From Podarcis liolepis (taxonomy: Eukaryota), in NCBI GenBank assembly GCA_965112155.1, contig OZ218103.1: a stretch of DNA of 64,000 nucleotides; one strand, written 5' to 3'. This document shows, piece after piece, positions 2,037 to 55,776 of the stretch (the first letter of the stretch is position 1; every line of letters begins with the position of its first letter). The notes under the pieces were generated by a model. The model was not told where the DNA came from, ran no database searches, and saw nothing but the letters and a program-made list of their open reading frames with translations. The position numbers and the translations under genes were made by a program.

Positions 2037-2135
2037 CTTAGGAAGAGACCGTGCTGCCTGAAGAAGTTTTCTGCGATGCTGTGGGTCACTAATACCAATC
2101 TCTCGAAGGTCCTGATCTTCCATGACATTACTGCC
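2037..2135 (-). CDS. ANKS1A: ANKS1A exon, 99 nt, second half of SAM1 ([33 protein letters not shown])
   Basis: CTTCCTACAG| acceptor, AAG|GTTAGA donor; phase 0 to 0; lies inside ORF 1959..2183. Confidence 0.96.
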
Positions 2136-20600: not shown

Positions 20601-22307
20601 ACTTTCCTAAAAATTCAAGGTGGCAGCAATAATGGAGTCCCAATAAAGACAGGTGTGGTCTTAAGTCTGAAATAGAGGAACTTTAAATTTTAAATGCATG
20701 TAGGGGCTTAGAAGGAGCAATTATAAATAAGTTGTCCCCTACATACTTTCCCCCTGACAGTATGAATGATACTAACAGTTTGTATAGGTGTTATTAAATC
20801 CAGTCATCCACCACTTACAGAATAGTCATTAACTGTAAACAGTTAATATTTTGTTAATCTTCCTAAATCTAACTCTTAGTGAAGGCTACACCTTTAAGTG
20901 AACAAATAAACACTACTCTGATTATTTAAGAAAAGCACTACCTGAAGTGGTTAACCCTAACAAGATTTTGTGAAAGCCTAGTCCACTTTGATAGCTAAAA
21001 GATTTGAGTTGTCTCCATTTCAAAAGAAAATTTACTTGTTTTGCATGGCTAGTGTTTTAACATGTTCAGGAAGGGATATCTGACCAGTTTTCAAACTCTG
21101 GACCTGCAGGTAATTCTGAAATTAGATACTGACCTTTCCTGAAAAATCAGCAAAGTGAACAGAGAGACATTCCTATGCTCAAGCTTTTTTAAGCAATTCA
21201 AAATCCTTTGCATCTGCCTTTAGGAAGGTGGAGACTGACAAAAATGTCTACTGTGATTAAGGATTTGCAAATGTGTGGTTTACATTTTCTGTGAAAATGG
21301 ACCAAAGGGTGATAACCCATCATTTTAGGATACTAAACCTTTGCTTCTTTCATAAAACGACTTCTTAAAGGAAGTTGGCATGTTAATAATTCAAACTCAG
21401 CAAGGATCCCCTCGGTAAGGATCTATTCCTTCCTAGTGCTGATGAATGATTGAGCCTAATTTAGCTAAGTGCTGACAGGGCCAACTAATGTTCAGCAACA
21501 ATGATTGCATAAACAATGTTGTGCTTTAAGCAGCTAAGTGATATGAATACCAAGGCAAGGATACTACACCTATTATGTAATTTAACCAGAATAGCCAAAG
21601 CTTATTCTGTTTTGAACTGTCCTGTCCATAGATATCAGGAAGTATTGGGAACGGATTCTTAAACAAAATCAAAATAGTTGAGATCCATCCTGCATATGTG
21701 AAATGGGTTAGAGAGGAAAGCACAGGAGTTTGCTTCTGCAATACTTAGTAGAGAATGCATCTTTACCAGCTGAAGCAGCAGCATTTAAACAAGCCCCCAA
21801 ATATACATGCATATGCAATCATTCCAGCAACATAATCTCTAGCCTGCAGGTTGCTGAAAATGTTCAAGGAGTTAACAACTGCAGAAAGAATTCAAACATT
21901 TTTCTGTCGTTCATTTCTATCTGAAGCTGGTAGCTAAACTCTCAAAGTAAGACTAATCTACTACCCAGGTATCAACACAGCTTGAGTTTAACCGTTCATC
22001 TAGAAAAGCTTTCTTGATGTTCTTTCTATGAGTTTGGGATTTTTATGAATACATAGGAGAACCCCCCCCCAAAAAATGAATTTTTTGTGTGTTATGTCCG
22101 TACTCATCCAGACAATCAAAAGAATTCAGCCTTGCCTTTGATGTGTTTAATTTGATCTGACAGTGCTGCATAAACTGTTTTATCTGAGAACCAAATAATG
22201 CAAATATATATCTGTATTGTACAAAACAAGTTTCAATTTGCTTTCCGAAAGGTAAGCTCTGCAAGTCCCAATAAAACCTTGTAACTTTTTCCAACAAAGC
22301 TACTTAC

Positions 22308-22414
22308 CAGGAAGCGAACATCATCAAAGCCATTGAGAAGCAGTTTGCTCTCATACTGCTGTAAGCCGATGGACTCCAGCCACTCCCCAACACTCTGCTC
22401 CAGCATCCGTGAAC
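22308..22414 (-). CDS. ANKS1A: ANKS1A exon, 107 nt, first half of SAM1 ([36 protein letters not shown])
   Basis: CTCTCTCGTCAG| acceptor, CTG|GTAAGT donor; phase 1 to 0; SAM consensus [11 protein letters not shown]. Confidence 0.96.
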
Positions 22415-22511
22415 CTGACGAGAGAGGAATCGGCAGACGCTTGAAAAAGGAAAACCCATTAAGGCGGTAGCAGCGGCACTCTGAGGAAGACAGGTGGCAT
22501 TGCCACATCAT
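22415..22511 (-). CDS. ANKS1A: Alternative N-terminus of a short SAM-SAM-PTB isoform ([32 protein letters not shown]), contiguous with the SAM1 exon
   Basis: ATG ATG at 22511-22506 is in frame with the SAM1 exon with no stop (ORF 22233..22619). It resembles the recalled ANKS1B short-isoform start [33 protein letters not shown]. Confidence 0.78.
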
Positions 22512-25500
22512 AGTCATTACCATAAAGAAGCCAAACCAAGGCCAGAGTACAACAATTAGCTGACAGACAGTTCCTCTTCTGTACACAAACCATGAACAAT
22601 AAGCTTCTGTCCTGTTCAAACTAGAGTGTTAATCGGTCTCCTGGTTATACTCAAACAAACTCTGAATCCAAGCTGTTTAGAACCATTCCTGGGGCCAAGG
22701 CATCACATGCACTGATTTTCTGGCTCAAGTGTGCTCCTTGCCAGGCAAAAGCATCCCAAACCTCACAAGCCTCCTGGGTCAGCTCCTTGTTTCATCTGAG
22801 GGGGCTGAAAACTTTCCAAGGCATCATTCCAAGCCAAGGCTACAGGCACGAGAGACAAGAGAGGGCCAGCTCACAAATAAACACAGCCCAGCAGATGCTT
22901 GCATCCATGCAACTTCAGATGCATTACCTTGTACAACAGGCCAGTAAGGAAGACTGTTAGCACTGGAGGTGCAAAGCAGTTAGAGAGAAAATACATCTTC
23001 ATGCAGCTGAGAGAGACAAACAGACACGATGGGTGTTCAGAAAAGCAGCAGCAGCCAGATTAGTGAACAGCTGTCCAAAGGAAGACATGCAAGACAAATA
23101 AAAACAAAAACAAAAAACACAAACTGCAGTAGAAGAATAAAGATTTATACTTTTTTTCCCCCAACAGTCCCGGAACAGGCAAACCATGGTACGGGCTTTT
23201 CTTTGTTATTTTATTATAAGGAGTGGAAGCATGAGGGACAACAAGCCTGAGCTTGGAAGTCCTGCCACTGTCATTTTATCACCTATCCAGATGCATGACA
23301 TCCTGACAGCCGGTATTGACTGATCTGGGCTGGGAACCAGCGTCAACATCTAGACTGGAACAAATAAGTATACCGGAGCATCCAGTCTGAGCAAAAAGAT
23401 AAATGGTCAGCTCATTTTCCACCCAACATGCCTGCTCCTGCCAGTTCTTTGTTGACTTGTATTTGCCCCTCCTTCATTTTCTTCCACTAAAGGCAAGTAC
23501 TACCTTCAAATTCCTTACTGAGATAACGAACAGCTTTCAGAACAAAGCATCTTAGCTCGTTGGTTTAAGGGGGTGAGGAAAGCCAAGCAAAATGAACACG
23601 CCCCCTCCCCTTTTCTCCGCAGCAGATAGGGTTAGATATGTCCTGGCACCTCCTTTCAGCCGGTTAGTCAGAAATAAATTCTTCCAAGAGCCCTGTAGAA
23701 GCTATATGGAACGCCTCTTCTTCCCTCCACACATCAGAGGAGAGTCTAGGAACTTGTTACTTTCCCTGTGCAGAACTGGTGATATTTGATGAAGCAAGGA
23801 AAGTTCAGAGCCCACGTCTTTGCAGTCCTCAGAGGAATTGCTATGCAAGTCACGCAGAATTTTCTCAGTCTTCCTAGCATGTCCGTCACTGAAGGGCATT
23901 TGCAAAATATTGATGAAGACACCGGGGTTGCAGTCTTTGAACCCTGTGGTTATCAGAAGTTCTGAACATCCTAAACTAGCCTCCACCCCTTTCTTTCCAG
24001 ACTGCCTACACAATGCAGTGCTGGCTATTATCTGAACAATCGAGGGGTTAGAGATCCTGTTACGCTGGCCTTCAGAAAAGATCCTCTGTTAAGCAAGTCA
24101 GTGTTAATGAGTGCTCGGGAGCTGGCCAGCCTTCTTAATGCATACTGCAGCACAAGGGATGCAGCACTCACAAAAGATTTCCTCCTCCCTTCTCTGACAA
24201 AGCCTGGGCAAAGGGACAGCATCTATATCCCCAAATTCCAAGCAGCAGGCTCTTGCTGGCCAGAGATTCTTTCCTTATCCAGGGCTGATTCCTTTCTACT
24301 CCATAAGCAGGCAAAAGGACTCTGGTATTTTCCCAGGCAAGCATGTGTCCCTTTCAGAGAGCTGCAGCAGACTGCTTTGTCTAAAGGCAGCAAGCTCCAC
24401 ACTTGCAACGTCTCTCGCTCTCTCACTGGCTGTTCCCTCCCCTCCTCTCATGCTCACACCCCTCCCAGCAGAAGCAGTGATCAGGTTTCAGAACAGAAGC
24501 TGGCAAGGGAGGGAGAAATAAGACGGCAGCTTTGCAATATTCAAATTGCAATTTCAAAAATTTGTTTGATTACCCTGAGCCATGTGGTGTGGTTTTTCAG
24601 CATAAAACGGATAGAGTATGTGGGGATTAATTTATCAGACGTGAGCTGAGATTTTCAGATACTGAAAGGTAAGCATGACTGAAGGGAGTCAGACCAATTG
24701 GAAACAAACATATTACACCAGCTTTCTATATGCCTGCATGTAGCACTTGCTTCGTCTTGGATTATTAAAGATGCTTTGCCTCCACAGATCTGATCTGATA
24801 CTGTAGTTATTACACCAAAGGCAACTTTTGTGAAGCTACTGGGGAACAGAATTGCCATTGTGGGGGGATGAAGAAGTCAAGTTACTAAACTCTCATAATT
24901 ATTTGGCAGCAGCAGTGTACAAGGGCCCTGAAAGTTTTTAGCTTGGATGTTCGAAAACCAGAGCCAGAATATATGCAAAGGCCCTAAACAGCGTTTTCGT
25001 AGTAAGTATAATTTCCAACACCTAACTATTGGAATATAAAATCAAAATCAAAACACAACTCCATTTCAAGTTTGAGAGTCTGAAGAAATTGTTTATGTTG
25101 TGATACTGATGAAGACAGCCAACGTAGTTTCATAGTTTTCCACTTAAGTCTAAAGTGTTTTGTATTTGCATAGCATGGCAAAAGAGAATTAAGCTAGAAT
25201 TTGCCAGTTGGAACTAGTTTGCCAAATGAAATTATCCTCTCTCCTCATGCACTGTTCTGGGAGTTCTCCCACCCACCCCAAGCCAATTTTGGAGATGCTG
25301 TGTGGAAAGCCCTGTTGCCCAAGAAAAAGCCCTTGCATAGGGCTTCTGCTAAAAGAATCCTACCCTCTGTGTTTAACTAGGGACAGCTCACTCAGGCAGC
25401 ACCAAAACATTTTGGCCACCAGGAAGGCTACTACATTAGTTTAACCCTGAGCACCTTGGATTTGGTAGCAGTTTATTATAATGGGATTGCAACCCTCTGG

Positions 25501-27830: not shown

Positions 27831-28185
27831 CAGTGGTACCTCACAAGACGAATGCCTCGCAAGACAAAAAACTCGCTAGACGAAAGGGTTTTTTGTTTTT
27901 TGAGCTGCTTCGCAAGACGATTTTCCCTATGGGCTTGCTTCGCAAGACGGAAACGTCTTGCAAGTTTGTTTCCTTTTTCTTAACACCGTTAATACAGTTG
28001 CGACTTGACTTCGAGGAGCAACTCATAGAACGCGGTGTGGTAGCCTTTTTTGAGGTTTTTAAAGACTTTGGTGATTTTTGAAGCTTTTCCAAAACTTTCC
28101 CGACACCGTGCTTCGCAAGACGAAAAAAATCGCAAGACGACAAAACTCGCGGAACGAATTAATTTCGTCTTGCGAGGCACCACTG
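27831..28185. mobile_element. Young TcMar/Tigger-like MITE, 355 bp
   Basis: TA|CAGTGGTACCTCACAAGACGAA...TTCGTCTTGCGAGGCACCACTG|TA; internal repeats of TCGCAAGACG; CpG-rich. Confidence 0.93.
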
Positions 28186-31100
28186 TAGAGTGTTATGGTC
28201 CACACAAGCAGGAGAGGGGACAACCCATTTCTAATGGTAGTACTCAGTAGAAGAAGCATGTCTCGTTTGATGGGCCACACATAAACATGTAGCCTAAAGG
28301 CTATGCTTCTGGGAGTGGCACAGTTCCAAAGGCCTCGGATCAGTTCCTTCCACTAGGCAATTGTTATTTCTACTATGTAAAAAGAACCACGTTCAGCAAG
28401 GCTGAATGCTATGCAGTATTTCCTGGAATGTTCATTGCTCCTGTATCAGAGGATTATGACTATGAACACAATGGACCCTTCCTCCACTTACAATGTCCAT
28501 TAATAAAAATATGTATCACAAAATGCCTTTAAAAGCAGATGACAAATTTAAGCGCACAGCTACACATTTGCAATATTTATCCAATTTAAGCGAGTAAATT
28601 TAGGTAAGTTGAAAAGATCGCTGCAGGCAGGCAAGCAAGCAGGGAGGGAGGGTTTCTTTGTGCAAATAGGACCAATTACTGAGCCTCTTCAGAAAGGGGC
28701 ATAATATGCTGAGGTGGGAAATCCAATCCAAAGAACAGCCTGATACGTTTCTTTTGAAACTTAAACTAATTTGAAGATGATTCCTTATGTTGAACTTGTT
28801 ACAGAATAAGGAGAGAAAGGATCTGCTTGGACTGCAGCTCCAGCAAATTTCCTTCATATAACTTTTGTTCTACAGTCACATAGTCAGATTTTATAGGAAA
28901 ATTGAATGACTTCCAGTAATGTGCTCCAATAATGGCATACACTTTCTGTGGACACACACGAGACTCCTATTTCACTCCTCCTTTAGCCAGTGCAAGCAAC
29001 AAACCTTAATCCGTGACTTAGCATTACATCCAAACCAGGAATCATTGTTCGTTTCACTCCAAATGAACCAAGATGTTACGCCAATATTTGTTCTTGGCTT
29101 ACCAATCATGGTTCATTGGAACCAAAACAAATCTTGATCCCCAGGTAGGACATAATGCGAAGACAATGATTGTAGTTAGTTGCTTCCACTTGCTGGAAGG
29201 GAGAATTGAAGCAGGAGCAATGTCCGCATTCACAGTGAACCATTGGCTGTAGTTTGCTGTAACATATGAACTGGGCCAGCAAGAACGAAAGGTTGCTGAT
29301 AAATTTATATTTTTAAATAAACAAATAATCAGAACAGCATTATGGAGTGCCGGGGGGGGGGGGGGGGACCGACGACGACTGACAGAAGCAAATTATATAT
29401 GGCAGTCAAATGCACCTCTGATCTGTTTTAGTTTAACTGATTTGCCAGAAAGTACATTTTTCTGCATCAACCAAATTACAGAAAAGGCAATTCTGCCAAA
29501 CAAGGAAGATCAATGAACATAAACACACTGGTCTTCTTTAATACCCACATTGAAATAAGTGACTCCCACCTTGCAGTCTTTTCTGCATAGATTACTAGGT
29601 TCTTGGCCTGTATTATATTACTTGTGTAGAAGATCCTATAAAAATTTTTTATATAAGCTGTTCCATTAACATATAGGTCGATGCAACACTTTTGAAAAGT
29701 CTGTGGTATCAGATGAGGCTTCTAGGTTCATGTATAGCACTACATATTTGTTTCTATGTTGTCTGCTACAAATATGAAAGATATACCCAGCAAAATACTT
29801 ATATTGTTTGGCCTGGCATGGATTTTGTTTTTTTAAGTTCTCAACCAAGGGGGAGAAAGTTTTAAAAGTGAATGGTGTATTTATTGCTTCATCTGAGAAA
29901 AATAACCTATTTCCAAAATGCATTCTTTAAGAGTTGTTTCTTTATATTGTTATCTTTACTTGTTGTAAAAATAATTTGCTTTATAACGTAAAAAAAAAGT
30001 GGAAACTGCAACAATATGTTGCGGTGTACCCTCCCTCCAAATACAAGTTCTCTGTTCAGAGGTCCAGCCAGCCATTTCATCCAAACAGGGCATGCCACTT
30101 TCTCTCTCCTCCTGCTTTTTTTCTTTGAAAAATTCCTTGGCTACTGAATATGATCAGTCCTCACTGGACTGTTTCTGTGGTTTCTTCACCACTTTAGGCT
30201 CATTTAAGATTTTTAAAAATGCTTCTGCAAAACTGGGTGGGGCAAGGGGGTATAACAGTCTTCTCTCTGAGGACCTGTGGGGTTATCAGAACTAAGCAGT
30301 AGCTTACAGCTTGTAGCTGTATTTCAATCCACATTCTTACTTCATGCTTCCATTCCAGGTGTGGAAGTAAATGCGTGGTTTTTTTGGTTTTATTTTAGCA
30401 CCCTTTAATGAGCTGTAAAAACTTGGGAACATTTCTGGTAGTTTTCTGAAAAGCAAGTCAGTCTGCTGCAGCACCTCTGAATGTTTTCATGTTTTTGCCA
30501 TGGGCTGTCACTGCTGCTTTGTTCTGCATCACATTTTTGAACACCGTACTAAAATATTCCACAAGCTGCCACAAGGTTTAACCAAAGATGAACTCCTGAT
30601 AATTTAAAAATCACTTATTCTCTACTCCTTATATGAGGAAGTATTGCTGAAAAAACCTTGCTATTCCCCTTCCTCTTGCCCCAGACTACAAGACTCCTTA
30701 AAGCAATCTGATGAAAATTGTGCTTTAATTATTACAGCAAGGCTTTTTCAATGACTTGAAGATGCCACCTTCAGGACTTCGTGTTGCTACAAATTAGTGT
30801 TGAAGGCTGGAGAAGATGGGGGTGGGAGCAGAACTAGGATGCAGTCTTCCACCTTTGTCAGAAAGTCTCAGTCAAGGTTGCCACGAAAGACGGCAAGGGA
30901 TTGAGGAAAGAGGTATAAAAGGCATCTTTTCCCAGGGCAAGTGGGGCTCTAGCTCATGTACATGCAAGAATCAAGATCCAGAAAGTGATTTTTCATGAAT
31001 GAAATCAAGCCAGGAAATTATCAGACATATGGGCCCTTTATACTGATGGTTTAAGGTTGCTTGAAAAGTGCTTTGTGTCCCACCCTCTCCTCTCCCCTTT

Positions 31101-32019: not shown

Positions 32020-32086
32020 CTGAAATCCTCTGCTGTTCCTGAGAAAAGTCAATGCCTTCACCAATGGAGCTCATTATTTTTTCAAT
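32020..32086 (-). CDS. ANKS1A: ANKS1A exon, 67 nt ([23 protein letters not shown])
   Basis: TTTTTCAG| acceptor, CAG|GTACCA donor; phase 0 to 1; near-identical to the recalled human peptide. Confidence 0.95.
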
Positions 32087-55655: not shown

Positions 55656-55776
55656 CTTTTGTTTTTTTATCTGTTGCAGCGTGTTTCTTAGTTTCTGCTG
55701 TTAGCAGCAGCTCATAAGGATGCTCCTCTTCTTCATCAGCTGTGCTTCCCCTACTCTTCCTCTTGCTGACAAAACC
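55656..55776 (-). CDS. ANKS1A: ANKS1A exon, 121 nt (GFVSKRKSRGSTADEEEEHPYELLLTAETKKHAATDKKTK)
   Basis: TTTGGTCAG| acceptor, AAAG|GTAAAA donor; phase 0 to 1; conserved EHPYELLLTAETKK. Confidence 0.92.

Follow-up and report, generated by a model that had tools for sequence, protein, structure and literature searches.

Does ANKS1A carry, directly in front of the exon that opens its first SAM domain, a start for an ankyrin-less protein like that of its paralogue ANKS1B? The question is raised by a 64,000-nt stretch of the Podarcis liolepis genome (contig OZ218103.1; hereafter, the window), in which the minus strand holds the ANKS1A gene and, within it, an open 5′ extension of the SAM1 exon. ANKS1A (Odin) has, to our knowledge, been studied almost only as a full-length ankyrin-SAM-PTB adaptor, and the short isoforms of ANKS1B (AIDA-1) belong to the major proteins of the postsynapse and have been linked to a neurodevelopmental syndrome. 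From the sequence comparisons described below, we consider it highly likely that 22523/22511-22308 (minus strand) serves ANKS1A as an alternative first coding exon, with an ankyrin-less start of the AIDA-1D type.

An in-frame extension of the SAM1 exon and its AIDA-1 counterpart

The SAM1 exon itself (22414-22308, minus strand; 107 nt) is flanked by canonical splice sites—acceptor AG at 22416-22415, donor GT at 22307-22306—and encodes the first half of the SAM1 domain, common to long and short isoforms. It was recovered by tblastn with ANKS1A proteins, and its peptide gave a Pfam SAM_1 match over residues 39-68 (E 2.7e-07). An earlier interpretation made from the letters of the window (the sequence-only reading) had held that the 97 nt before this acceptor are open, in frame, and encode a peptide beginning MMWQCHLS. 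This is indeed what can be read directly on the minus strand at 22511-22415: the extension opens with ATG ATG TGG CAA TGC (MMWQC...) and contributes a 33-residue N-terminus, MMWQCHLS...G. The closing Gly codon, GGT, spans the boundary: its first base is the G of the long-isoform acceptor AG, and the other two open the SAM1 exon. Two additional in-frame ATGs (MVMT; 22512..22523, minus strand) precede it and occur in birds, squamates, and some mammals—fish lack them—so we regard them as possible alternative initiation codons. The frame therefore offers ATGs at 22523, 22517, 22511, and 22508 (Kozak −3 base T, G, A, and A, respectively) with no stop before the SAM1 exon, and upstream it stays open until a TAA at 22631-22629.

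An open frame by itself is weak evidence, given that about 16% of 33-codon windows on the same strand are stop-free, the chance level. Among the eight mapped exons of the gene, the SAM1 exon has the longest upstream open stretch (71 codons), and this stretch is the only one to hold a Met. The same bases also appear to serve the long isoform, as had been suggested: 29 of the 37 bases preceding the acceptor AG are pyrimidines, and hence the final third of the extension, in which codons for F, S, L, and P abound, is at the same time the pyrimidine tract.

When the 68-residue exon peptide was compared by phmmer with 1.84 billion representatives, 130 matches were obtained, 59 of which span the whole peptide including the extension (residues 1 or 2 to 67 or 68; 60 with one near-full match). 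Two groups could be told apart among the matches, ANKS1A-type proteins with 62-100% identity and ANKS1B-type ones with 53-60%, and E-values went down to 3e-21; going by source names, the matches include ANKS1B short isoforms from sharks, rays, and a bat. The ANKS1B short N-terminus that the sequence-only reading had quoted is found, letter for letter, in the database proteins P0057, P0059, and P0060. Its proposed homology to the ANKS1A extension also held in the database alignment: the first eight residues are identical, and over the 33-residue start the ANKS1A-type sequences share 17-21 of 32-33 residues with the ANKS1B short isoforms, ungapped. The observed score was reached in 0 of 20,000 shuffles, and the outcome was the same with the first eight residues excluded. 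Both marks of an AIDA-1D-type start are thus present, namely an ATG-initiated frame contiguous with the SAM1 exon and an N-terminal peptide homologous to the ANKS1B short form.

In ANKS1B, an antibody raised to a peptide within the homologous N-terminus detects short forms of ~50 and ~60 kDa that are enriched in postsynaptic density fractions (PMC4565644), showing that this stretch is translated in the paralogue. The short AIDA-1 isoforms have no ankyrin repeats (PMC6684583); protein detection and localisation are known for ANKS1B only (PMC4565644, PMC6684583).

Constraint on the extension and its age

Conservation was assessed in 38 ANKS1A-type sequences, many of them open reading frame (ORF) calls on genomic contigs that read past the donor and so provide a built-in neutral control. 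Mean pairwise identity amounted to 83% over the first 27 residues of the extension and to 78% over the SAM1 exon, compared with 29% for the 12 residues upstream of the MMWQ start and 24% for the 12 residues translated beyond the donor. The conserved segment thus runs from the start codons to the donor. Substitutions within the extension are conservative (L/V/I/M, F/L, S/A), and no stop or frameshift was found there in any recovered sequence, in a search that could recover open reading frames only. Taken together, these patterns strongly suggest that the extension is under strong purifying selection in ANKS1A, in agreement with the earlier claim that the start is still maintained in this paralogue.

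Some ORF calls from other assemblies (P0065-P0071, P0077) begin at a Met internal to the SAM1 exon (MLEQSVG...) rather than at MMWQ, probably due to contig ends or to the gene caller's choice of start codon.

As the set of 38 had been chosen partly by the extension itself, we assembled a second set selected without it, using residues 70-519 of the bird short isoform P0131 as query. An MMWQ-type start was present in 28 of 116 ANKS1A models (318-907 amino acids), 27 being identified by motif and one by eye (Pseudoliparis, MMWRC...). The taxa behind these 28 models comprise mammals of all three groups (monotreme, marsupial, and placental) as well as birds, squamates (lizards and snakes), and teleosts, and the Pfam domains that the models contain are SAM and PTB only (PF00536, PF07647, PF00640). 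Within squamates, the extension of Anolis carolinensis isoform X12 is identical to that in the window, including a squamate-specific FSFF, whereas the flanks differ and contain stops. An intact, identical extension between diverged, stop-bearing flanks argues for continuing selection in the squamate lineage.

How old is this start? Its occurrence in both paralogues across jawed vertebrates, together with its absence from invertebrate-type homologues, points to an origin before the ANKS1A/ANKS1B duplication and retention in both genes as the most likely history, as the sequence-only reading had anticipated. Among cartilaginous fishes, an MMWQ-type start is also carried by P0018, a probable chondrichthyan ANKS1A ORF. 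Among the homologues compared, those of invertebrate type showed no trace of the extension. We also considered whether the extension might descend from ancestral constitutive exon sequence in invertebrate homologues and rejected this, as the weak alignments of P0079 and P0084 reveal no real similarity in that part.

Exon layout, a second start, and competing explanations

The tblastn matches of ANKS1A proteins to the window are collinear, with exon starts at ~63391, 62181, 60081, 55764, 50843, and 32089, followed by the SAM1 exon (22414-22308) and an exon at 2135-2037. In the long, ankyrin-containing form, the constitutive exon before SAM1 (32020..32086, minus strand; located by tblastn) lies beyond a 9.6-kb intron. 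Its final G completes a Gly codon across the junction from 32020 to 22414 (...QQRIS-G-SR...; G|GT), and the long-form proteins P0061 and P0062 show the same ...IS-G-SR... there. The second half of SAM1 is encoded 20 kb downstream (2037..2135, minus strand; by tblastn), in an exon that is 32/33 identical to squamate ANKS1A models. Of the SAM-SAM-PTB domains, the window covers SAM1 alone; SAM2 and PTB are encoded beyond coordinate 1, and exons were handled singly. SAM1 and its neighbouring exons are nearest to proteins named ANKS1A, not ANKS1B. We therefore assign the gene as the ANKS1A (Odin) orthologue on the grounds of the higher identity to ANKS1A-type matches (62-100%, versus 53-60% for ANKS1B-type ones), seven to eight exons in order by tblastn, and the 32/33 squamate identity.

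Two side observations concern the proteins used for this map. Residues 182-217 of Latimeria ANKS1A (P0062) gave a tblastn match with 61% identity at 55657-55764 (minus strand) that the hummingbird protein did not give. The latter (P0061; KFP05205.1, Calypte anna, partial) bears the source name ANKS1B; its SAM1 region is of the ANKS1A type and it is 62-92% identical to the ANKS1A exons of the window, so the label is probably a naming error at the source.

The region upstream of the extension harbors a second alternative first coding exon, which encodes MVCLFRDCWGKK plus one base (23151..23187, minus strand; 37 nt) with an ACCATGG Kozak context and a donor GT at 23150-23149. Located 736 nt upstream, it yields a Ser codon (A|GT) when joined to the acceptor at 22414, and its peptide matches residues 1-13 of Pogona vitticeps ANKS1A isoform X9 (P0180) at 100% identity; starts of this type are also found in turtle, marsupial, horse, and macaque models. 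The interval 22.5-23.2 kb hence holds two alternative ankyrin-less starts. Since the MMWQ extension forms the 3′ end of the 736-nt intron of the MVCLFRDCWGKK transcript, an MMWQ form needs a transcription start downstream of ~23150 or, less plausibly, intron retention.

Several annotated models extend further at the N-terminus (MLCAHKRNC... in birds, MSCLGPRNG... in Anolis), and these additions are collinear with 22708-22524 (minus strand). In the window the corresponding stretch is out of frame or broken by two stops, which argues that the longer N-termini are probably 5′ untranslated region (UTR) translated through a longest-ORF rule, the conserved start being MVMT/MMWQ. An upstream ATG at 22593, of the type used in birds, opens a 44-codon out-of-frame ORF (22459..22593, minus strand) that overlaps the MMWQ start; the homologous stretch is in frame in the bird models P0001, P0132, and P0133. 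It is relevant only if transcription begins upstream of 22593, in which case this ATG would act as an upstream ORF.

We thus propose that a transcript begins within the 9.6-kb intron and runs unspliced across the long-isoform acceptor into the SAM1 exon, and that translation from the MMWQ ATGs, or from the two preceding MVMT ATGs, would give an ankyrin-less SAM-SAM-PTB protein. In this scheme, the final ~40 nt of the extension would play a double role, supplying codons (F, S, L, and P-rich) to the short form and a pyrimidine tract and AG to the long one. The N-terminus, homologous to that of AIDA-1D/E, would have been present before the duplication and kept by purifying selection in both genes. 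For Podarcis liolepis itself, internal transcription initiation and translation are predicted from the sequence.

Several observations weigh against this proposal. No CpG island was detected within 2.5 kb upstream, the observed/expected CpG ratio being 0.08-0.38 across 22500-25000. Most of the database models that carry the MMWQ start are computational predictions, constraint was gauged at the protein level only, and in a transcript whose 5′ UTR takes in position 22593, the out-of-frame ATG there would be an obstacle to translation. Finally, a search of sequencing runs with 22250-22900 yielded no match in a run recorded as RNA; the matches were small runs presumed to be RNA. Fourteen of them contain 47-91% of the words of this interval. 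The highest share, 0.91, corresponds to every word that does not touch the 58 nt of downstream intron; a spliced RNA reaching 390 nt or more upstream of the ATG could produce this figure, which we take as a hint only.

The sole CpG-rich patch near the exon lies at ~27838-28200 (ratio 1.15, 28 CpG in 500 nt) and consists of repeated TCGTCTTGCGAAG-like units, with Tandem Repeats Finder (TRF) arrays at 27838-27885 and 28113-28150. We examined ~27850-28200 as a promoter island and discarded it, since its composition is repeat-like and it looks like a young repeat element.

Could the stretch instead be conserved for non-coding reasons—as branch point, pyrimidine tract, splicing enhancer, or intronic regulatory element—with the ANKS1A frame never translated? 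The last ~40 nt do form a pyrimidine tract and acceptor, and a measure of constraint taken on proteins leaves room for such a view. However, conservation extends over 97 nt, past the usual acceptor signals, and starts exactly at the ATGs, with identity changing from 29% in the 12 upstream residues to 83% in the extension. The recovered sequences, obtained as ORFs only, are free of stops and frameshifts, the substitutions are conservative, and the paralogous ANKS1B stretch is a proven protein N-terminus (PMC4565644). Purely non-coding conservation accordingly strikes us as very improbable.

We likewise give little credence to a scenario in which the extension codes for protein elsewhere and is an unused relic in this species, the ankyrin-less form deriving solely from the MVCLFRDCWGKK exon. 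That exon (MVCLF) shows no damage and its ATG stands in a perfect Kozak context, the extension sits inside the intron of its transcript, and the out-of-frame ATG at 22593 would also fit disuse. An unused relic is nonetheless hard to reconcile with an uninterrupted extension that matches Anolis carolinensis X12 at every residue, between flanks that differ and contain stops. An alternative first coding exon with an AIDA-1D-type start therefore remains our preferred explanation.

What the N-terminus might do is suggested by its cysteines. Cys5 is invariant in all aligned ANKS1A and ANKS1B sequences. Cys12 and Cys14 never vary among ANKS1A-type sequences or in teleost ANKS1B; in tetrapods neither is left in ANKS1B, and in sharks the ANKS1B protein retains only Cys12. 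One could envisage the 33 residues, with Cys5 (and, in ANKS1A, Cys12/Cys14), as a targeting module that takes the ankyrin-less proteins to membranes or into the postsynaptic density through S-acylation or through metal or partner binding. ANKS1A would then have an AIDA-1D-like isoform whose output is set by the choice between the MVCLF and MMWQ starts and by the overlapping long-isoform acceptor. We rate this extended model as unlikely. Lipidation of Cys5, raised already by the sequence-only reading, is a speculation built on the invariance of that residue, and a literature search on palmitoylation of AIDA-1/ANKS1B returned nothing relevant.

Annotated and published short isoforms

At the level of annotation, the MMWQ isoform is already known: RefSeq, Ensembl, and UniProt contain predicted ANKS1A "isoform X" models with this start for many species. 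In RefSeq, variants of this kind come from NCBI's Gnomon pipeline, which relies largely on transcript alignments. Annotated examples are found in birds (Sylvia atricapilla X7, Geospiza fortis X5, Apaloderma vittatum [MMWQCHLS start], Strigops, Pelecanus X2, and Athene X7), squamates (Anolis carolinensis X12, Pituophis catenifer X4, and Naja), mammals (Sorex araneus X5, Pipistrellus X8, Tachyglossus X5, and Puma X2), and teleosts (Alosa alosa X15, Maylandia X8, and Salvelinus X7). The novelty that the sequence-only reading had implied thus does not stand; with prediction pipelines listing the isoform in so many species, it is not a discovery. In the searchable literature, by comparison, we found no description of an MMWQ-type ANKS1A isoform, and the peptide string matched no paper.

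That ANKS1A has kept an ancient short-isoform start under strong constraint, in lineages as far apart as fish, squamates, and mammals, is of use to annotators and to those who design experiments. Results obtained with ANKS1A antibodies, knock-outs, or gene traps may therefore mix two or three classes of protein.

How does the candidate isoform relate to other short forms? The predicted ANKS1A models, such as Anolis X12 and Pituophis X4, have the same exon extension and N-terminus and a SAM-SAM-PTB architecture; several of them differ in additional N-termini taken from the longest upstream ORF. The MVCLFRDCWGKK isoforms (Pogona vitticeps X9, Chelonia mydas X12, Dromiciops X5, and Equus X19) are likewise ankyrin-less and use the same SAM1 exon, but have a separate coding first exon spliced to the normal acceptor at 22414, excluding the MMWQ extension. 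A literature search for an ANKS1A short isoform or alternative promoter returned solely an ape-specific form, driven by LTR2B, a young long terminal repeat in intron 7, and spliced to the next exon to give a 593-residue product (PMC12082684). It, too, is devoid of ankyrin repeats and retains two SAM domains and the PTB domain; however, it is restricted to apes and unrelated to the ancient MMWQ start.

The closest counterpart is provided by ANKS1B, whose isoforms AIDA-1D and AIDA-1E (SAM-SAM-PTB; postsynaptic density) also start in sequence that abuts the 5′ end of the SAM1 exon without a break, and like the predicted ANKS1A short form have no ankyrin repeats. Beyond the eight identical first residues, the window's N-terminus and that of the tetrapod ANKS1B short form have the motif G.S..KR.P in common. 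They differ in that ANKS1A (Odin) is the other paralogue, with a SAM1 part ~55% identical to that of ANKS1B, and in that ANKS1A retains the Cys pair of SECRCYR, which tetrapod ANKS1B has lost (DYRYY).

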